From Trichoplax adhaerens (Eukaryota > Animalia > Placozoa), in contig NW_002060964.1 in the NCBI RefSeq assembly GCF_000150275.1, positions 611,643 through 675,642 of the forward strand: DNA of 64,000 nt. The letters run 5' to 3'. This document shows positions 1 through 28,900 of this stretch, piece by piece (position 1 is the stretch's first letter; each line of letters opens with the position of its first letter). The notes below the pieces were generated by a model that was given only the letters and a program-made list of their open reading frames with translations, was not told the origin of the DNA and searched no databases. The translations under genes were made by a program, and so were the position numbers.

Positions 1-3000
1 TCTCTTGAGCATTGAGCATTCTACTCTCCACTTCAATTTAATAATAGCGATAGTTGATTTTTGTTAGCACGTTTCTAGCTGGATTTAAGATCAGAGTCTA
101 GCATAAAACGAGAATCGTGTCAAGCTTAGAATGGGATCCAAATAGTAATGTAGGCGACCATTTTCCTCTTCTAATTCTCTATCTTGGATGGGGAATGGAG
201 CGGCTATAGTAGCAATAAAAACCAGTAATGGCTACCATGGCGACTATGACCAGGGCGTTGGCCAGTAATTACCTATCTGAGTATAAATCTGCGGTACTTT
301 GCTTTCAGTACGTAGTAGATTTAAATATTGGTTGCATTATTATTCAGTTTATTTAAAGTTTGTATGCAAGCAATGGTGATTGATATAAATAGAAGTGATA
401 GCTGTAGTTTCAAATGCAGCTATCGAATCTTCAACAGATTCTATGGATTGCATCTATTGCTATACCTTGACTCACATATCATAAAGACACGACATAGTAC
501 GCTTGGCTAAATCATTTCTTCCTGGAAAATCAATACTAGATCTCGATCAGGATTGGACGCGCATCTGCAAGTTTATTCATTATCATTGGCATTATATCTT
601 GATTGATAATATGTGATAATTTTTATTAATTTGTGCCTTTCTTTGCTAGGGGCGGAGGCGGAGGGGAGACTACTTTGCATTCTAGAATGGCCGCACCTTA
701 CCTACAAAAAATAAGGGATGCTTCTAACTGGAGCATTTTAATTTTCTGAGATATTTTCACAGTCACTACAACCTGTAGCTTTTCTATAACTGACAAAGAA
801 AGCTGTAGTTTATAGCTAGTATCGACAAAATCGTAAGCAACTAGCGTCTACATCATAGAGAATACGAACAAATTATATATTTAATTGCACGACAACTGGA
901 TCCAGGAAACCGCTAGAATATTTAATTGATATAAATTGAGGAAATATAGCGCTATTAAAATATTATTTTCAATTTTTCCATCTTAATAGCATCAAGATCG
1001 ATTATTTCAGTCAATTTATTGATATTACTAATTTAGTTACATATAGGCCACTCTAATTGGGCTAACAATAAATTTAAAAAGGAAACACATTTAAAATTCT
1101 TTAAAATAAGTAGCCTTTTCTATCCAATTCTTTTACATTACGTGAAATAGGGGTGTCCAAGGTTTGTAACGTGCAATAATGCCATTACGTATAAGTAATT
1201 CTTTAAGGTATTAAACTGCTAAGATCCCTAAATGCAATAATTTATCTTAAAGTATTTATTTACAAGCGAATTAGAATAATTATTATTCTTGACAAAATTT
1301 GTTAAATAATCGTTCTATTTAATGCTAGTGTCGTCATCAGTTTACTTACCAGCTTATCATTTATTTCTACTAACATTATTCATCAGAACTGTTTCATTGA
1401 TTAATGGCAACCTGATATTCATTTGCACCGTGCAAGTTCAAAGAGTTCTTTATTAAAACAAGGGGTCGATTAATCCATCTAATCTGTAAATATTCCTATA
1501 ATGTTACTTCAATATGCTGGAACTATTATTGATATTGGATTTCTTTAATCATACACGTAAGATGCCATATGGTTTAATTTCATGAATTTGTACCAGTAAT
1601 TAACCTTTAACATTAGTCTTACGATACCAGAAATAGAACTGCTGTGCTTGATATCTTCTGAAGCCAGATATGTCTAATCATAGCCAATAAATAAATAAAA
1701 ATAGAAAGCCTTCATTGCTATAGCTTTCAGTTAAACTGCTTGATCTTGCTATCATACATTTAGAAAGTCCTCATGTTTTTATACACAACTTAAGCATTAC
1801 CTACTGTAACGTGGTATATAAATTATTTATTATTAAGACACTAATCTATACGCTTTTGCAATCAACTCGTAATTTATAACCTGTAAGCTAAGTGCTACGT
1901 TATAACAGGGTTCAATATTTATGTAAATCTCAACGATACTCGAATGACTATAACCAGTGCAGTAATTTGCAGAATTTGCAATTTAAAAATTGGAAATACA
2001 ATTTCAATATTGGTTAAGTAATTTTTCGTAACGATAACTACTCTCTCCAATTTCAAGTGAAATTGCACGAAGACGAATTGATTGGATACCTAGCAGAAAT
2101 TAAAGCACTTTTTATGTCTCAGATTCTCGGTGATGTGTATTTTGTTAATTAATAAAGTTAACAAGGAACATCTCTCTTAAATATGTACAGTCAGGGAAAT
2201 TTAATGTTTCCACCAATGTAGCTGCACGTTGTTGCAGTGGCTCCAATATACACTATACAGTAATATAAATATTCGAAATATAGTAAATTAATATCGTTGT
2301 AGAATGGAGTACAGGATTAACTGTTTGACAAATTCAAGTGCTAATTATTTGGCGTAAGTCCTATCTCAATGTCTGAAAATTATTTTCAAGTATGGAAATA
2401 GAATGAATGACTCCATTACACTGCTATATTGTAACTATTTTTGTCTGACTTGCCGCAGATGTATTAGTACATTTTAAATAGAATTTAATATCGGAACCTG
2501 AAGCATATTTTCACACTTTGTCATTGTTATGCTGATGTCAAAGCCAGATGGTAACTCCGACCGCTTCTTAGGTCGTAAACAAGAACTGATGAGACGATGT
2601 TTGTGTTAGTAAGGATTTGTCTCGATCAACAATTCAGATTTAGTCTAAACATGCTGCAGAAGTGTTAGTGCCTATGCATTCATTAGCATGTCTTTAATGT
2701 TGAGAACTAGTAAATTGAATAAAAATACTGGTATAAGAATATATGTCAAAGCATTCACGATGGTGTTATTCTATATTTTTCCTTATTAAAATTTCTAGTA
2801 GTAAACTAAACTAGAGTACATACAATTTCATCGCCATTCAATTTAATCATGATACAAGATTGCCGCCTATTAACACCCATAATCATATTATAAACAGATT
2901 GTTTGATCCTTTTGCGGGTGTTAAAAAAAAAATTTTCTTTGAAAAAATAAGATCATTTTCTGAGAAAGATGGAAGCATCCATTTCAAGAGATACACCACG

Positions 3001-4850
3001 CATTTCATTTATATTTAATTTAAATTTTATTTTGATTGAGTTGAAGAAAAATCAGAATCTTTTTTTGACTTTGCACTGCATTGAATAATGTACGCGTATA
3101 CGACAAAAAACATTTAATGTAAGTTTTTTTCATAGATTTATAAAAACATCCAGTTTATGGGGATTCCATTTTCGAATGGAGAATAAGTCATGGCAGGGGG
3201 ACTGATTACTGACGTAGCAATAATTTATGGCAGCCGATAATGATTTGGCTATAAGTAGAAATAACATACAGCAAAAAGCAATATTACTTAAATACAGTGC
3301 TATTATACAAATACATGAAACAGGAATTAAATTTTTGTTGGCAATTATAATCAGATAACATTTTGAATACACTGCAAAGGAAAAAAATTGTGAAATAATA
3401 AAGCAAAGACTTCCGTATAACATACGAGTAGACATCGGTAAATATAACAAATAATAAACCATTCAATAACAATGCAGTCCATTAGTCGAAATTTATAAGC
3501 GGAACATAAATTTTAAAATGTTAAATACAGTATATCATTAAGAATGTTTATAAGGTCCATCCTTCATAATTATTCTTATTTGCATAAGACAGTATTTTCC
3601 TGCCCGAATAACAATTATAAATGAAAATTTTATGTACTTATCTAGAGGTCATACTTGAACATAGGGAAAGAAATAATCTCAGAGTCAATCATTCATTATA
3701 ATCGTGAGAGACAATAATCCATTGATATCATGCGAACCAAGTGCAAAGTCCTATCTTGACACTTGCAACCCACATAGGGTGCACAGATTTTGTTTATTAA
3801 TCAGATGAAGCGATATTATCAATCAATTATGCCATAAGCTGAAAGGAAGTCATTATTCCGATATCTATTTTCTTAACTATGTATTAATCTATCATATGGA
3901 TTTAATGAATCAAAATCACGATGACAATAACCAGGAAACAACTCATTTGCATCATTAGAATTCGTTTAGATTAACATTTAGTACTGATAAGTAACACGAT
4001 TCGAAATTAGGAAAGAGCTCGTAGATTAGCAAAAAAGTTACAGTATAGAATATTTATTGAACCAATTCTATCAGGCTAGTCATCAATGTCATTGCACCTG
4101 ATTTGGTTTTAATATTGTTATTTCCAAAGCGCATAAAAAAGCATGCAGAAGGGATCAAATTAATTTGATTTTACACACTAACAAATGAATTACTCGCATA
4201 CAATTTTTATTGCATAATGTAAGATTGATATGCTAGTATATAGAAAAAAATCTAGGTGTACATTGCATGCTATTATTAATACTTCATACCATTGAAATTG
4301 TTTGAGAAAAAGTGATTGAACCCAGATATGTTAGTAAAATGAAAATTTTTAGTGTTTAAGCATAAACAGAAACATTTATAAATAGTCCTTATATATACGT
4401 TACGATCAAAAGTCTAGAAATAAACAGACTGAGATTGACATTAATCGGAAATTAAAATTTAACTTTCGCCATTACAAGATTGAGCTTCTCTCATGTAATA
4501 GGATTACAGAATTTCTTTCCTTTTTGTGTAGTGTACAATGTACAGTATAATATATAAGCTTGTTGTATATTTTTAAGCAAAGATAGATAATATCCAAAGA
4601 ATACGGATAAAGTCAACGATAGATTTGCAGTTGTTAGACACGAAACAGCGTAATTGTTAAGCAAATAACAGGATGGACCATATAATAACTCGTATATGGA
4701 TAATAATAATAGTAGAAAGAAGGCAGGTGTAATGACCAAGTCTCATTTCTGCCAACCTTAGCAGCAAATAACGGTACCTCTAAACTGTGCAACTTCGTAA
4801 TCTTGCCAACAATCTTGTTTTAAGTAAATTAGTGAAAGGGTACATGAACG

Positions 4851-5387
4851 CTATCTTGTACCATCATTGCTTTCTTCACTAATGGAAGAATGATAGTAAG
4901 TGGTAGTAGTCGTTGAAGAAGTACCTGCCCACCACTGTCTCAATCTTGAAGCAGGAGATTCACCAGAGGATGATGACCTGGTTACTTTAAAATCGACCAG
5001 AAATCGATCGCTAATCGATTGCAACTCTCTTCCAATTTCTATTTCGGTTGCGAGGGAATGACGCCGCGGCCTCACTTCTTCAATTTGATTCTCTGCTGGT
5101 TCATCATCATCATTTAGTGCCATTGCTGATGAGACGCAAGCCATATTCTGAATAATTGGTACAGATTGAGGTCTACGAATTAAGGAGGTTTTCTTTCTCA
5201 GTGATAGACGCTCAGAAGATTGCCGAAATGAAAATGTCATCTTTTCTTCTCTATCATCATCATCATCATCATCATATAAATCGATTTCGAAACGGTTTCG
5301 TCGAATTGATGGAACATCAATTGGATCTGATTGAGGCAATTTTTTGCTGCCATATTTATCTAATGAAAATTGCTGATCGTTTGCCAT
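4851..5387 (-). CDS. Candidate BH3-only pro-apoptotic Bcl-2-family protein (BAD/BMF-like), 178 aa, single coding exon
   Basis: Uninterrupted ORF with ataATGG start context and an in-frame upstream stop. Residues 118-129 IGRELQSISDRF fit the BH3 pattern (Phi-s-x-x-L-x-x-Phi-s-D-x-Phi; cf. BAD YGRELRRMSDEF, BMF IARKLQCIADQF). Also carries RRPQSVP and RPRRHS phospho/14-3-3-type motifs and a C-terminal RLRQWW (cf. BAD FQSWW). The rest is low-complexity, with no BH1/BH2 and no TM segment. Confidence 0.72.
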   Translation of the reverse strand: MANDQQFSLDKYGSKKLPQSDPIDVPSIRRNRFEIDLYDDDDDDDREEKMTFSFRQSSERLSLRKKTSLIRRPQSVPIIQNMACVSSAMALNDDDEPAENQIEEVRPRRHSLATEIEIGRELQSISDRFLVDFKVTRSSSSGESPASRLRQWWAGTSSTTTTTYYHSSISEESNDGTR

Positions 5388-8300
5388 TATGATATGAAAT
5401 GTAGTTTAACATAGAATGCAAAGCAAGAAATTTTACACTGCCTGGCAAATTGTATCCAATTTTTAACGTAGACTGCAAAGTACAGAACTTGTTGTATTGG
5501 AAGTAATTTGTTCCAATGCTACAGATGGTATTCCGTAGTCTCTAGTTTGTGCTGTAATTTCCCAAATCGAAACAATACTAGTATTGTCGTTGATTACTGG
5601 ATTAAATTGTAGTGCGATTTGCTAACTTTAAAATTCTCCAGGCAAAATGATCTTTTCAATAGCAACCGATGCGCTATCTTTTTAATGATACTCGTTGCAC
5701 GGAAAAATAAACCCTATATAGTCCCAAGGTTGTAATCCGGCTTTCGAGAAACTTATTATACAGCTTCTATGATTGTTTACCTATTTGGATAGAAGGAAGT
5801 TATTGATGAGTACTTTTACGATATGAATAATTGAGCAACATTTTCAATTAAAGAATAAGCGAGAAATTGTTCAAATTCTACAAGTACGTACTGCAATCTG
5901 CTAATCGTATCCAATCGAGTCGAATGTAATAACAGTTACTGCATTCAATGCGTTTCTGGAAAGTTGGATGGTTTTATTCGCTACCTAGCTTGAATCACAG
6001 TAGATAAGAATAACAAGACGGAGATAAAAGGTGGAAAAATTGCTTGATCGTTTGAAAAGAAGGTGGTTGTGGACGCCTAATCAATAAAAAGATGATAAAT
6101 GATCGTCAGTGATGGACAGATGATGACATATAGGATCAAAAAACAAAGGTTTTCTCCAGTTAAATTCGGTTGGCAAAGTAAGTTTGTTGACGCAATTTTT
6201 GTATCGTAATTCGGCACTGCTTTAGCGTTATCGAATCGTTTCAACGTATTTACTCACTTCTACTGTATTTGTTGCTTATTGCAATGGTTATTTTTCCTTA
6301 TTCAGCCTTCCATAGGAAGATCAATAACGTACGTATTTATTAGTTCTACTGTAGTCTGGAATTGGTGGTAGAGCACGTTACACGAAATGGAATCTGTAAG
6401 TTGCTATTCATGAACACCACGTTATAAAGATGATGGAACGACCCTGTATCAGGCAATGATGGATGTTGCAAGATGGCTGCACCCGGAAGAGTTTGTTGAT
6501 TCATTTAATTTTAAATACGAGGATATATTTACAGTAAAATCCTTTTTTATGACTACACGAATGTCTATGCCGGCCTTGGTGTTTACAAAATAACTCTACT
6601 TGGCTCTCTGGCCAATATACTGTAGAATCTATACAGTGTTTGTACAGTGCAATGTACAGCCTGTTTCTGTCCAATTTTTTTTCTTGTAACTTTGCCATAT
6701 TATAGGCGTGACAATTCTTGGTAAAGGGCATAGCGTTCAATATATCGAGAACCTTGGGTTCAATCTTGATGGACATGTCCACGAGAGTGGATATGTAACT
6801 CTATAACGATCCTATAGCAGTTTATGAACTCGGTGATGGTTTAGGAAATTGTTGTTTACATGATGTCATGGTGAGTCATAAGATTGATGATGGCGATAAT
6901 CGCCATTATTAGCGTGATTGCAAAAGAGATCAAATGGATAGGATTGAAATCATGGTATCCTAACTTTGATTTCAACTGTCGTCATTGATCCCCTTATTTT
7001 ATATTTTTGAAATCATTACGCTATGAATATTGATAAGGTGATTGTTGCGCGATGATTTTGAGCATTTAAACAAGAAATGAAATACATGAAAAATGAAGAA
7101 ATAGCCATTTGTAAAGCGAACTCACTCCATTTCTTGAATCCCTTTAAGGAAATGTTATGATGGTGAGCTAGCTTGTTTGAACAACTACTTCCAATAAGAC
7201 ATTACTCTCATGACAGTCGTCCTGCTTTAGCCCATTACCTATCATTTTAACTCGTGTTTTTTAATTGGCCGCCCGACCAATAATAACGCCAAGCTAGTGA
7301 AATGTACCGTATCATCAGTTTAATTCATGCCGGTCTCAAGATGAATGTGCTAAAATGATGATTTTAAAAATGACTCCATTCTAGTAAGAGTACGTTCGTC
7401 TATGTATAGCTTACCTTGTAAAAGATACCTGATGAGCACAAGTGTGGTTGAAAATCGGATAGGAATGGCAGTCAATTAATTAAATAGAGATTCTTTGCTG
7501 GAGGTTTGCACTGTTTTTAAAGATGATTCGCCCACGCTCTTTTGGCTTGGTGTCGAATATCGTTTATTAATCAGTGAATCTTTTGGTGAATTTTTATTTG
7601 ATCCAAGCTATTGCTTGATGTTAATCTTGAGGGATTATCGTTCTGTATTTCAACATGTAATTGTTAATTTCGATTCGCGATGATCGTTTCAGCCGTCTTT
7701 TGAATGGCTTCTTTACAAGAGCACCCATGTATCAAGGTCTTGTCAAAATGGGTTTACTGTGATCTTCCTTTTACCCTCTTCTAGTCTATTTCTATTTCTA
7801 TTTCTTGTCGGAAATTTCAACAGCGATGCCAGAAATGATTGCCAGCTCCAATTAGTCAAGTGTAATTCTTCTTTGTGTTTCAAAGCGTCGTCGAGGTTGG
7901 ATCGATGACTTTGCAATGGATGATTGCAATTTGCAAAGTAGAACAGTTTAGTTTGCAATGACCAAGGTGATAGGATGGCGTCTAGTATTGTCCAAGCAGA
8001 ACAAATTGAATGTGTCCCTGCTGGTCTTCTCTCTATTAAATACTGATGATTCTTCTGGTCTATTCTAAGTCTAACTGGATTACATAATCGTTCCTTTATA
8101 TAGTTACTTGTCTGCAGTTGCTCGATTCTTCAATACAAATCAAATAAACAACATGAATGCCACAAAAAGTCTTTGCAACGTTTTGGTGACGTTTTTCAAT
8201 TGGGTTTTGCTTATACAAGACTCGGCCTTGACCAACACCATGGTTACAGTAGAGTATTGTGTAACTGATGACATGAAACAGTATCTTGGACTTTCACAAC

Positions 8301-11423: not shown

Positions 11424-14400
11424 ATGTCTTTATTTACTGGTTTAAATATTAAATCAACTCATGAAGGTGAGCAACGTCAAGATGATGATGGCCAACAGAC
11501 TAGGCAAGAAAGCCATTTGTTGCAATCATCTTTCTCCTTTCTACGCCAAGGTAAGCATAACTCATCACATTCACGTTCTTCCTAGGTTATCATCATGATT
11601 GATGAGTCACGAAAACCATCCTAATTCATACGTATCAAAATTGTACCATTAGCCACTAGCTCTGATAATGAAAGCGCCATAAGTTTAACTCCGGAAAAGA
11701 AGAATCCATCCAGTCATGTCAGAACAACTAAAAAGAAATTCAGAAAGACAAATAAGCTAAAACCTGGTCATGCCCGACAAGAAGCTTTACAAGTCGCTGC
11801 CCAATTTGAAGGTAAGAGAATACCGCTTCAATGATCGCTAAATCATCAAGATAATACAAAGACTGACGGTAGAATAGGAGTATTAAGAACTTTCATAAAT
11901 GAAAACTTACTTATTAGTAGTTTAATTCTGTGCTCGACGTGGGTGTATTATTCGATTTAAAGGGATTCAACAACGATCAGGTGATGATCACGAAAATGCT
12001 ACAAGAAGAATGCCAACAAGTGATAAAGCTAGTCTTCAGGGATCCAAGGAAATGGAGACAACTGATAGTGATAGCCAAATTGAGTTAACGCCAACAAGTG
12101 CTAAAGTGAGTCTTCAAGGATCCGAGCAAAGGGAGACAACTGATAATGATAGCCAAATTGAATTAACGTCGCAGAAAAATCCAGGCAATGCTACTATGAA
12201 TGTTATTCAACTCTCTGAGGAAGAAATAGCTCAATCAAGTAGCAGCAGTAGTCAAGCCATTGCAAATGAAGATTGCAGTAGTAATGATACATCAATACAA
12301 TCGGATATACAAACCATGACGATAAAAGAAAGTCATAATGATTATGGTGTGCAATCGATTAGCGAGTCAAGCTACTCGGATGATAGAAGCTTGGCTGGAA
12401 AGCTGCGTATTCAAGACAATGATACAACCCATTTAGCGGATGATGGGGATATTGAAATTTTACTAGAGACAACCAAACAAAGTTCAACCTCTCATAATGA
12501 TCACGACCAAGATACAAAGGACGATGATTCTAATAAAGGTATACTCGTATACTGATAGCAGCCATTTTCTACATTAAATTAGCATAGGTTACAATATTAA
12601 AGTGTAGTACACAGAGTAGATTGATATTTCTTTATGATCCACTATTAAACAAAATGAAAAAATTATACACCATGGAGATATACGAAATTAAGAAATCCTT
12701 CATTGAGATTTTGACTCCTATAGTCTACAAATAGTACATTTTCAATTTTGTAAATATATAATTGTCAATGAATTGCACTTGATAAACCTTTTTTTTGATT
12801 CCTTGGTGTGTGTAATCATGACTGTTGCAGAGGAATTCATTAGTAAAAAAGTTATCAACATTAAAAAAGTATTGGATTCTAAAGTGAAGCAAAATGAGTA
12901 AGTTATCTTTAAAATATACCTAAGGAAATATTTTCAACTAATAATACGCTGTACTGTACAATACTTGCAATTACGTCAAATCAGCCATGATTCATGGTGA
13001 ATGGATAAGACTTATCTTATCAATTATTGACTATGCAAACTAACATTGGTTTATCCTAGATTCCAACTAAACAAGGTCAAAATCGAGTATGAAACGTATG
13101 TTAAATCGACGACGGAATATTATCAGCAAAGACTAGATTTACGTCATGAACTATCGAAATTATTTGATGAACAAGATAAAGCTGCAGCTAGAGAAGACTA
13201 TGAAATGGCTGAAGAAATGAATAATAAGATAGATGATCTAAGAGATCAATTAAGTATTACAGCTGTAACTCATCGCCACCATCAAGATAATCAACAGACG
13301 ACGTCGATATTAAATAAATACATTGATGCGTATGAAGAAGAAATCAATGCGTACAAAATAGCGGTTGAAGAACTGGTTGATATCGAAACAGAAGAAAAAG
13401 TATTTATTGAGGAGCGACAAAAACAGTTAAATGATGAATTACACCAAATAAAACATTTTATAGAAGCTAAAGAGGATAGATTAAAGCGTTTACGAAGTAG
13501 AGTTGTATTAGATAGGCAACATATAGAAAATGAAGAAAATTTATTAAAGGTAATTTTTACCGATTGGTCACTTCTGGAATGCATTCATTCTAATATCGTA
13601 AAATAGGATAATTCCATTCTGTAATCAATAACTGATGTGAAATACTTTATATTACAGGCAGAAGTAGAAAATAAAACTCAAGTGTACTCTAGTAGAATAA
13701 ACGTACTAACTTTGGAATTATCAGATATAAGAAAAGAAATAGTTAATTTGGAAAAGTTATTAGAGGAAGCACATTTAAAGGAAGTAGAACATGTCCTAGC
13801 AATTGAGAAAGAACAGAAAAATATCGATATTGTTAAAAAAGAATTATCACTCGAGTGGTCAGATCTAAGCGAAGAAAAACTAAAGATCAAATGTCGAGAA
13901 GACCAGTTAGAAGATGAAGAGGTGTTATGGACTTTAATAGATATAACTTAATAAGCGTTATGAAATACCTTTGCGCCTATTTATAGCATCTTTTAACAAA
14001 GCCGTTATTCAAATTAATGACCTAGAAAAAGTTGCAATTATATCAGCGTGAATACGATACAAAAATGGAGGGTTTAGGACAAGCCGGATTCAGGTATTGA
14101 ATGATGATGAAACATTATTTCCACCATAAAATAATGTATATAAGTCGGACTTTCGGATTTAATCCACTTTATTCTATAGAGCTGATTCAGCATTTGGTTG
14201 TATATCCGCTCTTATCAGTGAGAGTAAAACTGATCTTGACAAGAAAAATCTAGAATTAGAGAAATTTAAGACGTTTAGAAAGAAGTGGCCATGCAATACA
14301 TCTCAGGTTGCGCAAACGCTAAGGTAACCACTTGTAACTTTAAATAAGTCTTTCTCCAAAAAGCTGCTGCTTTGCTCTTGCTTGCCTTTTTTGGTTAAAG

Positions 14401-22900: not shown

Positions 22901-25900
22901 CCGGATTGGTAAATACTGTTTAAGATTTGTTCATGGCTTGTGATTTCATTGCATAAATTCTGCAAACAAACAAAAATTAAATTTAAAGCGAGCCATTTCC
23001 ATCGATACCTAAAACATGCATTTCACAACGCACAACATTGATTAACTCGTGAAAATACAGCATAATAACAGAGTTCTCTTATCCCGATCAAGTAGTTATT
23101 CAACGTTGACTTATTTTTCTATTAACCGAGCAGCATTGTATAATATCACAGACAAGTAAATGATCATCACAATACTACAATATTATAAACATTTAACAGA
23201 ATGCAATGCCATTTCATTTTACAAGTTATGCCTTGCTGACCTGGTGTGAAACTTTGTAATTATGGACTTCCGACAAACTAGTACCCACTTCCTCGGACTT
23301 TGCTTGAAGTATTTTTTCTTCTAACCAGCGCTATAAATACGATACAGGCATAATAAGAAATGATATGTTTCAGTTGAGTCATAACATAAAGAGGAGAAAT
23401 ACGCCAATTAAGACATCTAATTTATTGATTTAGATACTAATGCGACTTAGATTAACTGCTGTACTTAGACACAGTTATCGTTGTTACTGTTATACTTACA
23501 GTTTCGTCATCAACATCGCGGAAGAATTGAAAAAATCTTCGCGCAGCTTCTAACTTTTTACGTTTTTCTTTACAAGGTTCATCGAGGTCATTGTACCTAG
23601 CGTACAGTATAGGGAAACGTCGATATAAATTTTAGTTCCAACTGTATATCTACCTAAGTTAAACTACTAAAAGTGTCATCCTAAGACTGCATTTCTTTGC
23701 ATGACTAGCTTACAGATATAGAACACGTTTAATATTAGTAACGATACCTTTGCTTCACGTTATTATATTTTTCATGCATATTTTCCGCATCGTAATGGTC
23801 AGCCTCTTGAAATTTCTGTACTTGTTTCTCTAGCTGATCGATACGATCTTTACGAGCAGCAATATCATTTTCAATTCCCTAAACGAAGAAGATGTAAAGT
23901 AACGGGATGAGTCTATTTGGCGAAATAGTATAAGTACAATACTCGTAAGCAGATGATCCACTTATTTCATTTGAAAATTTTTATGCTAGTTCATTTATAT
24001 TCTTGAAATGAGTTCAATTAACTGCATCTTTAAGCAATCAGCGTTAAAGAAATGAACAATAAGGGCAGAATCCAATCAATTGCCTATTATTAATAAAAAC
24101 CTATAACCTATATTGGCAAAATTAGATCACTTGAATGAGCACCATTTGATCAACAATGTGATTGCATATTGTACGTACTATATGATCATAGTGGCAATGT
24201 ACCTCAACTAACGGTTGGCGAAATTCTAGGAAATAAACTAAGCCTATCACAAAATTGAAGAATACTCTAGACTAAGAGATGGAATACGGTTGAAGAGTAT
24301 TAAATTTAATCCCTTTGCCACGATGCAAGTGCAAAACAGTAAGCATTTTATAAATCAACGGTAGAGCTGAAAGAGAAGAGTATGAACGACTATTGTCTAA
24401 GTTCGTAGATTCTTTGATCATAAACCCTTGATGAACAAGAAGATTGAAGTAATAAACTAGAAAAGTTAAAAAATACTGACTATTAAGTTAATGAAAATAC
24501 CTTGAAGTATACAAACAGAATTCCTTACTACAACAATGAAAATTCCAGAGATACGATGGTCAACGTCAAAACTATCCAAGTAAGAATAAGCTAGCTAATA
24601 ATGGGCGAAAATGTTTGTAACATATGGGAATTAAATGTCAAAGCACCTTGGATTGACGATTTTTATTTGGAAATAGACACTGCCATGCAAGCATAATCGA
24701 CGCAGAAATTGCCTTAATCTTCTTGAAAACTGGACGGCAATAAGCCAATTCTATCGTAAAAGATTGAAACTGTTTCCTAGTGCTTGTACTGTATTTATTT
24801 TGTTCAAAAATAGAGTCAACAACTTTATCTGTCAATGCATTGGGAAGATAAAAAGCAAGAACTCAATATTTGGCGTTTGTAGATACTACCGAATATCGAT
24901 TAGCGTCAAAACTAATGGTTCAAGTCATAGACTACTAAATATTGAGTTGTGCTAATAAGATCTGGAAGGTGTGTGGCCCCATTTTCATCTCTGATTACAG
25001 TAATAATAATAATTTAAAGATATCAAGTTGAACCTGCATCATCACCGTACTGTAGTACATTATAGATTAATTCATTAACTTAATTATACCGTATATATTT
25101 TCGGAAGGGCCCTTGGGATAGTTGATAAGGATAAATTGAGATATCGTTTAATCAATTTTACGAATTCATTTTACTGTACTGTCATGATGGGTTTTCTGGC
25201 CAAACCCTCTTAAGTACAAGTGGTAGAGTAGATTAACGTCCTTTCTAATTGAATAACATGGATCAACAAGAATCGAATGGAGTCTTCCTTTAACTTGATG
25301 TGCACTAGTACTGTGCTTGTAGAAATAGCATAAGAAATGATGCTATGAATCCTACGACTACGTTGGTACAATGTTTCCTTCTGGAAGAGTACGAAAGGAA
25401 ATTCGACTTTGTCGTGAAAGTATCAACTAGTGACTGGATCAATCGTACTTGCATGTAATGAATCACTTATTTGATTGCAATAAATAGATCATACGGCAAT
25501 ATTGCACTCGATAATCCAGTACAGCAGTACACTATTTTCAATTTAATTCCATTGATATTGCTCAAAAAAGCAACTACCAATTAATTATCTTTCTAACCAT
25601 GATCCTACAGTAGAATGAACTTATGCGGTCTGTGGACGAAAGCTATCATTTATTCGGTCTATGAACTTACCATTTGCTGGTTGATTAAATTAGTGCAGGT
25701 AATAAGGTCCTTGCCAGTATCTTCAACCGTTAATATTGATTGGATATGGTCCAACCATACTTCGAGATCGGCTACAGAACGACTAAATTGGACTTGGTTA
25801 TAGACTTCGTTTAACATGCGGCCTTTATTAGCTGATGCTTGGCATAATTTCAACCATTCATTTTGCAATTCAGCAATGCGATCGTCGACTTCACTTTCTG

Positions 25901-28900
25901 CCTCGCTATGATTATCAATGATCGTTTGGCCAACGTCTTTAATACTATCTAATTGATCTTTAGTGGCGACTAATTCAGCTTCAAAGGTTTGATGTTTCTG
26001 CAATTTGCCAGTTAAATTAGTTGGATCACGATAGGCTTCATCGTTGGCTAATTGCTGCTTTTCACTAATCCAGTCGTTCAATTCATTACATTGCTGATGG
26101 AATTGTTGCAATTGAACAGCTTGTTGTAATTTGACTTCAGCATCATTGAATTTACCGTAATTGTCGTTTAAACGCTCTTCAATTGCCAAAGATTTAGCAA
26201 CCAATTTGTCCGAAGCATAGTGATCATTCTCCGACATACGGCGAGCAAATCGTTTAACGTGTGCAACTTTATCGCTGCATAATTCTAAATTTTTCTTGTA
26301 TTCTTTATGCCGTTTGACCAATTCAATTATATTAAACAAGGATAACTTCTTTTGGCGCTCTTTATCGATAATCGTCTTGACGAACTTCTTTAATTTATTG
26401 GCTTTGGCATGATCACGACCAATGCCCATTTCAGCAACAGCTTTGGTCAGAAACATATCTTGCTTACTTAATGATCCTTCCAATTGCTTAACATCACGCT
26501 GAAATAGCATGTGCTCGTAATTTTGTTTCAGTAAGAGTTTACGCTTTTCGCAGGCTTGTAATAATTCTTCCCATTCTTGGACAATTTCATCAACTCGTTG
26601 ACGAAGGCGACGTCCAGTTGTGTCATCAGTGTAATATTGCGGTGCCACTGAGAGAATATTGTTATAAATCATTTGACGACTTTGGACATCATAGGTTAAT
26701 TCTTCATGTTCCTTAGCTAATTTCTCCGCACCCGATAATGTATTAGCGATATCGTCTGAACTAGCATAAATTTGTTGCGTTTTGATCCAATCGTGCAAGT
26801 CGTCCATATCAAATAGTAACTTTTGGTAATCGCTACACTCGCCCAAGGTGTTGCGCTGTTTATTGGCTTTATCCAAGACGTTGTTCCAATTTTGATATAA
26901 TTCAGACACACGATCATTTAGCATAGTCTCGTAATCTTCCTGTTCCTCTATTAGTTGAGCTTTTTTGGCTTCGATAGCATGTAATCGCTCCTCAACAGCA
27001 GGTGTATCCCGCTCGACAGCATTGATTTGACGCTGTAATTGCATAATAACATTAGGATCAGCAGTGGATGAAAGTTCGTTGTCTAAACCGCTTCCCTTTT
27101 GTATCACCCAATTTTTGGTTTCATCAATTTCGTAAAAGAAATCCAGCAGACGTTTCTTATTATCGATAATCTCTTTCTTGACTGCAATAAGAACGACCAA
27201 TTGCTTCCATTTACCATTTAAACGCTCAATTGAGGCTCGTATTTCATCGCTATTACTATTTTGATTGTCGATCAATTCTTGGCCATCGCTTCCAACTTTT
27301 TGATAGCGTTCTTGATTAGTATTGACTTCTTTGTTGATACCTTCAAATTGCCGTGATAATAAATCTGCTTCCGACATATCATTTGGTGCTTCGATGGATT
27401 CCAATATAGCTACGCGATCACCAACCCACGACAGTAAAATTTCATTTTCATCTTGATATTTATAAAATAACTGCATTTCTTTTAGACGTTCTTCTCGTTT
27501 ACTTAGTAATTGAAGGAGTAGGTCGTAATTTTTAGAAATACGAAATTTTCTTTCTACCACATCATCAGAGGCACGATCTTGCGGTGCTAATTGCTCCGAT
27601 GTACTTTCTAAGCCATCAATTTGCTCGCGGTAGGCGCGAATTTCATTACTTAAATCTAAATGAGTTTTCATCAATGATTCAACACTACCTTGATCGACAC
27701 CGTAATTATCGATCGACATCAAGCTAACATGTAATGTAATCCAAGCTTCAATGTTGTCAGCTTCTACTAATAATTGCTGAAGTACTAACATCTCATCGAT
27801 ACGTCGTTGGCGTTTTGCTAAAATATCGGTAACATTTTCCCATCTTTCTTGTAAATTATCGACATTATTGCTAATCGTCGATGATGCATAGTGGCCATTG
27901 TCGATCATACCGCGACCTACTTTTAGGATATTCTCAATGACAGGTTGATGGCCATTGACTTCAGCTTCTAATGCTTTCTGTCGATGATCAAGAAGAGTTA
28001 ATGAAACGTAATCTTGGACTTTTTTCAAATTGGATAATTCTAAGGTTTGCTCCTTTTCTTTCATCCAATTTTGCTCATCTTCACAATCTTGATAGAACTG
28101 CAATAATCGCTGTGAGTCTTCTAGTTTAGATTTGCGATCGGCAGCCAATTGTTGGACCTCATTTAATGCTTGTCCTAATTGATCAACACCATCATGGATA
28201 TCTTCATTTAATGGTTGGCCTACATATCATTTTCATACAAGGATGAAGTTAGTTACAATGAAAAATGTACATTCCAATTAGTTCACCATATTTGACGTGG
28301 AATGAGATAGAATGTTTATGAAAGAATAAGTAAGAAATACAATATCGGAATGCGAGTAACTTTTGCATCTAAATTTCATAGATTTACCGTTTTCATCTTC
28401 TGGTGCCTCAAAGGCTTCGGCTTCAGCAATAACATTCTTAATACGATCCGCATGTACAACGATATCGCTTTCCAGAATACTATGGTTTTGTAGCAGATTG
28501 TTGACATCTTGCAATTCTTTACCATAATCTTCTGATTGCAATAGCGCCTAGCAAAAGATATTAGCATAGTTACAGAAAATTTACTCAGTACACGCGAGGA
28601 ACTGATTCCGGTATGGAATATTACGTTAATACTGGTTAAGCTCGAGCATTTTTGGCAGATCTGATCTACGTTGAGGCATGAGATAACCGGACATGCATAA
28701 ACTGTATTACATTACGTTTAAATGTTCAAGGTAAGAAAATTTTCTACATTAAATACTAGGCTACATGCCCATAATTAATCTTACAGTTCATATAAGATCG
28801 ATTTAACGAAATTAAATTTCACAGAAAATTTTCTTATTACCTTCGTTTCTTTAGTCCAATCGATCATATCTTCTAATTCTTGTAAAATCTTCTGCAATTG

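Follow-up and report, generated by a model that had tools for sequence, protein, structure and literature searches.

A transcribed and conserved gene of Trichoplax adhaerens encoding a candidate BH3-only protein with a BAD-like layout

BH3-only proteins typically consist of a disordered chain that carries a single amphipathic helix. In BAD, serine motifs, the BH3 motif, and a WW element come in this order; in BMF, a WW follows soon after the BH3 motif, and a motif for binding dynein light chain 2 (x-T-Q-T type) lies N-terminal to it. Many proteins contain BH3-like short linear motifs that are not functional BH3s. BAD is phosphorylated by Akt at S136 and by PKA at S112 and S155, and this phosphorylation moves BAD from Bcl-2 to 14-3-3 and thereby inactivates it (PMC3214075).

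In Trichoplax, the BH3 of trBak was found bound to trBcl-2L2 in a crystal structure (Popgeorgiev et al., PMC7527217); trBak (trBcl-2L4) was proposed as a placozoan 'BH3-only-like' sensitiser, and it was conceded that a divergent BH3-only protein might have stayed elusive (Popgeorgiev et al. 2020, PMC7527217). No BH3-only protein was found in Trichoplax by three surveys (PMC7527217, PMC7022251, and PMC8998228), two of which (Banjara et al. 2020 and 2022; PMC7022251 and PMC8998228) reported none in Placozoa or Porifera; a preliminary description of the locus studied here had suggested that none was described in placozoans, in agreement with all three papers. The Hydra BH3-only candidates (Lasi et al. 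2010) were, as far as they are presented in the papers citing them (PMC7022251 and PMC8998228), the earliest-branching ones reported until now. Two ideas rest on the reported absence from Trichoplax: (i) mitochondrial permeabilisation in early animals was controlled by multi-motif Bcl-2 proteins alone and (ii) trBak acted as a stand-in sensitiser. In the literature to 2026, searched by locus tag and for placozoan BH3 with most subscription journals lying outside the coverage, no report of the gene described below was found.

The window, i.e., the whole stretch of 64,000 nucleotides that was analysed, contained at 4851..5387 on the minus strand an ATG-started ORF of 178 aa plus stop, an uninterrupted coding sequence of T. 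adhaerens that was present just as the preliminary description had given it. A search of the T. adhaerens assembly (105.6 Mb in 1414 contigs) found this gene in one copy only. The closest database protein was TrispH2_006090 of Trichoplax sp. H2 (178 aa, 99% identity), and the T. adhaerens protein TRIADDRAFT_61373 (XP_002117369.1, annotated as uncharacterized) was identical to the 178-aa ORF over residues 1–154 and divergent afterwards (see below). Elsewhere in the window, an 829-aa open frame with six Spectrin-repeat stretches (25659–28148, minus strand; Pfam E 3.5e-104) was recognized as part of a large, unrelated spectrin-type gene, and an ORF at 13046–13606 on the plus strand displayed a sub-threshold match to the CCDC-167 coiled-coil model (E 1.5e-4, 22 bits vs the cut-off of 27).

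Logan contigs from four runs were mapped onto window 2800–7800. The contigs of run X1 covered the whole region without joints and were DNA-like; in the contigs of X2, X4, and X11 (X11 was recorded as RNA-Seq, and X2 and X4 were taken as RNA from their splice joints), the whole ORF lay within the last exon of a spliced minus-strand transcript. The joints in these three runs were 5777>5889, 6075>7414, and 6075>6257, all of them reading CT..AC on the plus strand, that is, GT..AG introns on the minus strand. A single contig of 1963 nt was composed of 7734–7414, 6075–5889, and 5777–4321, with the entire ORF uninterrupted in its last exon. The parts of the transcript outside the coding sequence were as follows.

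7414..7800, minus strand: 5'UTR exon 1, with contigs extending 5' beyond 7800
6076-7413, or 6076-6256 with the alternative exon, minus strand: 5'UTR intron, GT..AG
6257-6411, minus strand: alternative 5'UTR exon, from the contig joint 6075>6257
5889..6075, minus strand: 5'UTR exon 2, bounded by joints in X2, X4, and X11 contigs, without a long frame in any reading frame
About 5778-5888, minus strand: 5'UTR intron, GT..AG
5388..5777, minus strand: 5'UTR portion of the last exon, each of its three frames closed by stops
3046..4850, minus strand: apparent long 3'UTR, with RNA contigs unspliced to about 3046-3214 and contigs as such unable to show true ends

The preliminary description had put forward expression as something to be checked, and the contigs of X2, X4, and X11 showed the gene to be transcribed and spliced; its statement that the gene was intronless held for the coding sequence but not for the gene, whose 5'UTR was interrupted by two or more GT..AG introns according to the transcript contigs. 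That the ORF might be a piece of a longer protein fed by upstream exons was ruled out: inspected exon by exon, the 5' exons had stops in every frame, the nearest in-frame stop being located 7 codons 5' of the ATG, and therefore the 178-aa ORF was the only substantial frame of the spliced minus-strand mRNA. The main ATG was in a strong context, with A at -3 and G at +4. On the 3' side, the unspliced contigs reaching to about 3046 suggest a long 3'UTR, and a contig break at about 4321–4331 in one run may represent a shorter isoform.

Two further observations concerned the 5'UTR. An upstream ATG in a weak context at 5412 (minus strand) opened an 18-codon ORF overlapping the main start codon out of frame, and this upstream ORF, together with the two 5'UTR introns and the alternative exon 6257–6411, is a hint that the candidate death gene may be controlled at the level of translation. 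Within window 5513–5652, two alternative contigs of 139–140 nt were found in all four runs, one of them with three differences plus a gap of 1 nt. The assemblies thus seem to have been broken by an allelic bubble in the 5'UTR.

The JGI model TRIADDRAFT_61373 comprised 193 aa, in which the conserved Thr-rich tail of the 178-aa ORF was replaced by a 39-residue end taken from a hydrophobic ORF lying some 1.7 kb further downstream (window 3130–3462, minus strand). The predicted GT..AG intron behind this C-terminus had its donor directly after WWA (4925) and its acceptor near 3248. The JGI spliced C-terminus was discarded and the 178-aa form preferred, because the contigs of the three RNA runs were unspliced at this site and the divergent orthologues (see below) kept the read-through tail; the H2 annotation thus looks correct. 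The preliminary description had the protein ending in WW, which did not hold, since 25 more residues, belonging to the Thr/Ser-rich and partly conserved tail, followed W152–W153. The partial conservation of this tail (T156–R178) favours the unspliced 178-aa form above the spliced JGI version.

The elements of the 178-aa protein, in N- to C-terminal order, were as follows.

5157..5174, minus strand: RPQSVP (R72–P77), 14-3-3 mode-I-type motif (RxxSxP); R, P, Q, S, and the final P invariant
5055..5072, minus strand: RPRRHS (R106–S111), basophilic RxRxxS / RRxS serine motif adjoining the BH3 helix N-terminally; invariant
4992..5054, minus strand: predicted amphipathic helix L112–D132 holding the BH3 (AlphaFold2, pLDDT 84–88); invariant in orthologues except residue 124
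5001-5036, minus strand: BH3 core IGRELQSISDRF, I118–F129
4923..4958, minus strand: SPASRLRQWWAG (S144–G155), BAD/BMF-like 'WW' element; second invariant block with a short predicted helix at 145–154
4854..4922, minus strand: Thr/Ser-rich C-terminal tail T156–R178, partly conserved at H166, S168, I169, and E171–S173

The BH3 consensus h1-small-x-x-Leu(h2)-x-x-h3-small-Asp-x-h4 was satisfied by I118-G-R-E-L122-Q-S-I125-S-D127-R-F129, so that the BH3 residues listed in the preliminary description were all present, namely hydrophobic I118, L122, I125, and F129, small G119 and S126, and D127. The lack of a TM anchor stated there was likewise borne out: the highest 19-residue Kyte-Doolittle mean was 0.88, and no transmembrane segment was found. 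S126 was invariant, yet it was preceded by Q-S-I or Q-E-I and basic residues were absent, so that no PKA-type context (R-R-x-S) was found for the serine within the BH3 in any orthologue. No dynein light chain TQT-type motif was found in the 178 aa. The kinase assignment for RPRRHS and the 14-3-3-type function of RPQSVP are both putative. At window 5280–5294 (minus strand), R-F-E-I-D(-L) followed by a run of seven Asp resembled a TOS motif; this TOS-like F-E-I-D-L was not built on, since the orthologues had F-E-M-E-S and F-E-V-E-S, and only F-E-hydrophobic-acidic was kept.

Two further full-length relatives, P0003 and P0004, one recovered from an ENA contig and the other from a Logan contig, displayed 58% and 51% identity to the T. 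adhaerens protein and presumably represent other placozoan lineages. The conservation was compared across three lineages with four orthologue sequences: 46% of columns were invariant against an overall identity of 51–58%, and the orthologues retained the start, the length, and the invariant blocks. These blocks were R106–Q123 (18 consecutive residues), I125–L130, S144–G155 (12 consecutive residues), and R72-P-Q-S75-x-P77; further invariant short motifs were the MAND start, SxPIxVPS, and RFE followed by an acidic run. The invariant 18-residue run coincided with the BH3 motif, and none of 20000 shuffles of the conservation vector reached that length. A loose BH3 regular expression gave about 0.8 matches per shuffled 64-kb window in six frames; the BH3 motif by itself is thus no rarer than chance, and it is the conservation pattern that exceeds chance. 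The preliminary description had looked to conservation peaking at the BH3 and the phospho-motifs, and conservation did peak on the BH3, on the basophilic and 14-3-3-type serine motifs, and on the WW element. Within 106–130, conservation spanned all helix faces, and therefore the groove-binding face was not singled out. The ORF thus belongs to a genuine gene that is transcribed and evolves under constraint.

The sequence comparison was also applied to known families. Against Pfam, the window protein had BMF (PF15185) as its sole match (E 0.0076, 16.1 bits vs the cut-off of 27, residues 86–129), and the four orthologues, compared with 24736 models, matched only BMF (four of four, best E 9e-4) and BAD (one of four, E 0.014). 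When all six frames of the genome were scanned with the BMF model, this ORF was the sole candidate at a genome-wide E of 0.66, and the same model also gave a sub-threshold signal in a bacterial control genome; the BAD model (PF10514, cut-off 28.2 bits) matched neither the window protein nor anything in the T. adhaerens genome. The 31-aa core, compared with all PDB sequences, gave three matches with E 0.4–1.0: (i) the unrelated kinetochore protein DAD1, which came top with about the same score as the other two, (ii) a BMF BH3 peptide, and (iii) a stapled BAD BH3 peptide, the latter two aligning with the core in the expected register. A profile search of PDB sequences returned nothing. The protein-language-model neighbours, all with scores below 0.9 and thus leads only by the rating of the tool, belonged to BMF, Bim, Bik, and PXT1 clusters for the whole protein and to Bak, BMF, PXT1, Noxa, and PUMA clusters for residues 98–160. 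An exhaustive profile search among 1.8 billion representatives returned relatives only at placozoan-level similarity, with no bilaterian or cnidarian relative; the long repeat proteins P0005–P0007 from this search were rejected as summed-repeat artefacts, since they matched in many stretches and repeats were visible in P0006 and P0007. The protein thus appears BH3-only-like and most like BAD/BMF, yet none of this sequence similarity is significant. Homology to BAD or BMF, to which the preliminary description had likened the protein, was therefore not upheld, with Pfam scores below the gathering cut-offs, the genome-wide E of 0.66, and no bilaterian or cnidarian relative among the representatives searched.

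The AlphaFold2 model, built on the four-sequence alignment, had a mean pLDDT of 57.8 and a pTM of 0.24, with helices only at 112–132 (pLDDT 84–88) and 145–154. No Bcl-2 fold was found in the candidate, either as a PF00452 match in Pfam or in the AlphaFold2 model, and no BH motif other than BH3 was present. The T. adhaerens genome contained four Bcl-2-family genes, none of them at the candidate locus, and all four had the classical intron directly after the BH2 tryptophan (contigs C1388, C1414, and C1412). Two of them, L001, encoding the 6YLD protein, and L002, which was Bak-like, were located on the same contig about 20 kb apart on opposite strands. The first exon of L001 matched chain A of PDB 6YLD with E 2.7e-95, the match covering the chain except for its final 8 residues, and 6YLD is taken to be the trBcl-2L2:trBak BH3 crystal structure of PMC7527217.

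Residues 30–174 of the L001 exon and residues 101–142 of the candidate were used as input for complex prediction. The predicted complex had an ipSAE of 0.76, compared with 0.01 for the best of three controls; in a calibration that included neither peptides nor disordered chains, 51 of the 78 solved complexes had attained this ipSAE mark, as had 2 of the 108 mismatched pairs. The runs had at least 92% of contacts in common, and the partner pLDDT was 65–67. In the predicted interface, T114–F133 of the candidate lay on V79–F132 of the receptor, that is, in the alpha2–alpha5 canonical groove including BH1 N122-W123-G124-R125. The receptor contacts were V79, E82, L83, K86, F87, S90, M94, R97–T99, T108–T119, N122-W123-G124-R125, and V127–F132, and in the predicted pose L122 of the candidate was surrounded by receptor V112, L116, A128, F129, and F132. 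Modelling with a Trichoplax pro-survival Bcl-2 protein, as suggested in the preliminary description, thus passed the controls (0.76 vs 0.01); this pass may be a recall of the solved 6YLD complex, whose ligand resembles the candidate helix.

Compared to BAD, the candidate was likewise short and disordered without a TM anchor, had Ser, not Gly, preceding the invariant Asp of its BH3, shared G-R-E-L ... S-D-x-F ... F-K with the aligned BAD BH3 peptide, and carried basophilic serine motifs including RxxSxP N-terminal to the BH3 and a WW element C-terminal to it. It differed from BAD in that S126 within the BH3 did not have the basic residues making the BAD serine a PKA site, in the spacing of elements, and in its additional acidic run and the Thr-rich tail after WW. 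BMF was its nearest Pfam and language-model neighbour, with similar size and disorder and with the BH3 peptide in register (T-E-x-x-I-x-R-x-L-Q-x-I-x-D-x-F), but the candidate did not contain the TQT-type motif and scored 16 bits against the BMF cut-off of 27. With trBak (trBcl-2L4), the candidate had in common the BH3 core E-I-G-R-x-L-x-x-[IL]-[SG]-D ... V-x-F and, according to the complex prediction, the groove of the 6YLD protein as binding site; unlike trBak, a multi-motif Bcl-2-fold protein with a TM anchor, it had no such fold, no BH1/BH2, and no TM. The Hydra BH3-only candidates were, like the protein described here, non-bilaterian, short, disordered, and defined by the BH3 motif; no relationship to them emerged from the exhaustive profile search, in which nothing beyond placozoan-level relatives was found.

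Taken as a whole, the gene probably encodes an intrinsically disordered candidate BH3-only protein with a BAD-like layout, a reading to which a probability of about 0.6 is assigned. As suggested by the predicted pose together with the established BH3-in-groove mechanism, helix L112–D132 would fold on binding and place I118, L122, I125, and F129 in the hydrophobic groove of its pro-survival Bcl-2 partner. This partner is presumed to be the 6YLD protein, possibly also the paralogue of the latter, with D127 pairing with the NWGR arginine of BH1. Groove binding would displace or pre-empt trBax/trBak and in this way lower the threshold for mitochondrial outer-membrane permeabilisation. A weaker layer of the proposal is modelled on BAD: survival kinases might phosphorylate S111 (in RxRxxS, abutting the helix) and S75 (in RxxSxP), and 14-3-3, for which the T. 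adhaerens genome contained two genes, might hold the phosphorylated protein away from Bcl-2, plausibly blocking groove binding. The WW helix (145–154) might, speculatively, aid membrane or partner contact. That the protein is in addition a true orthologue of the vertebrate BAD/BMF lineage, and that a kinase- and 14-3-3-gated sensitiser was already present in the placozoan–bilaterian ancestor, is considered unlikely.

The same data were weighed against other explanations. The protein might be a conserved disordered signalling protein, e.g., a kinase/14-3-3 client or an mTOR/Akt-pathway substrate, whose helix binds some other partner and whose likeness to BH3 is coincidental; this is a tentative alternative, and a somewhat doubtful one. 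It would accommodate the non-significant similarity to BH3-only families, the frequency of BH3-like strings by chance (about 0.8 per 64 kb), the presence of other invariant short motifs (MAND, SxPIxVPS, RFE plus the acidic run, RxRxxS, and RxxSxP), and the conservation of 106–130 on every helix face, but it does not account for a predicted groove pose that was confident and specific relative to the controls, for weak family and language-model matches that were all to BH3-bearing proteins and to no other disordered families, or for the resemblance of the helix to the Trichoplax Bak-like BH3.

A BH3-only protein acting as a direct activator of trBax/trBak, or as activator plus sensitiser, and not as a pure sensitiser controlled like BAD by phosphorylation and 14-3-3, is rather improbable: the BH3 resembled BMF and Bak-type motifs just as closely as BAD, and S126 was without basophilic kinase context, so that a BAD-type switch within the BH3 is not evident, but a BAD-like layer of control is consistent with the invariant RxRxxS and RxxSxP that precede the BH3. 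An ORF that arose by chance in a transcript which is non-coding or not translated, giving no functional protein, would be compatible with the low-complexity composition, the upstream ATG, the very long 3'UTR, and the failure to detect any domain; it is nevertheless scarcely credible, given that full-length orthologues at 51–58% identity kept start, length, and invariant blocks, that the main ATG was in a strong context, and that the gene was annotated independently in two Trichoplax genomes.

With its expressed and conserved gene, this candidate BH3-only protein is a concrete contender for the apoptosis trigger reportedly missing in placozoans. It suits the established reagents of the group behind PMC7527217, namely recombinant trBcl-2L1/L2, ITC, and Bax/Bak-null cells expressing trBax. 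If the candidate assignment is true, BH3-only regulation, possibly with phosphorylation and 14-3-3 control, would predate the cnidarian–bilaterian ancestor. If the protein were moreover an orthologue of BAD/BMF, the mitochondrial death switch would have been coupled to growth and survival signalling already near the base of the animals, and BH3-only proteins would be neither a cnidarian–bilaterian novelty nor derived from Bak-like proteins as proposed for Trichoplax.
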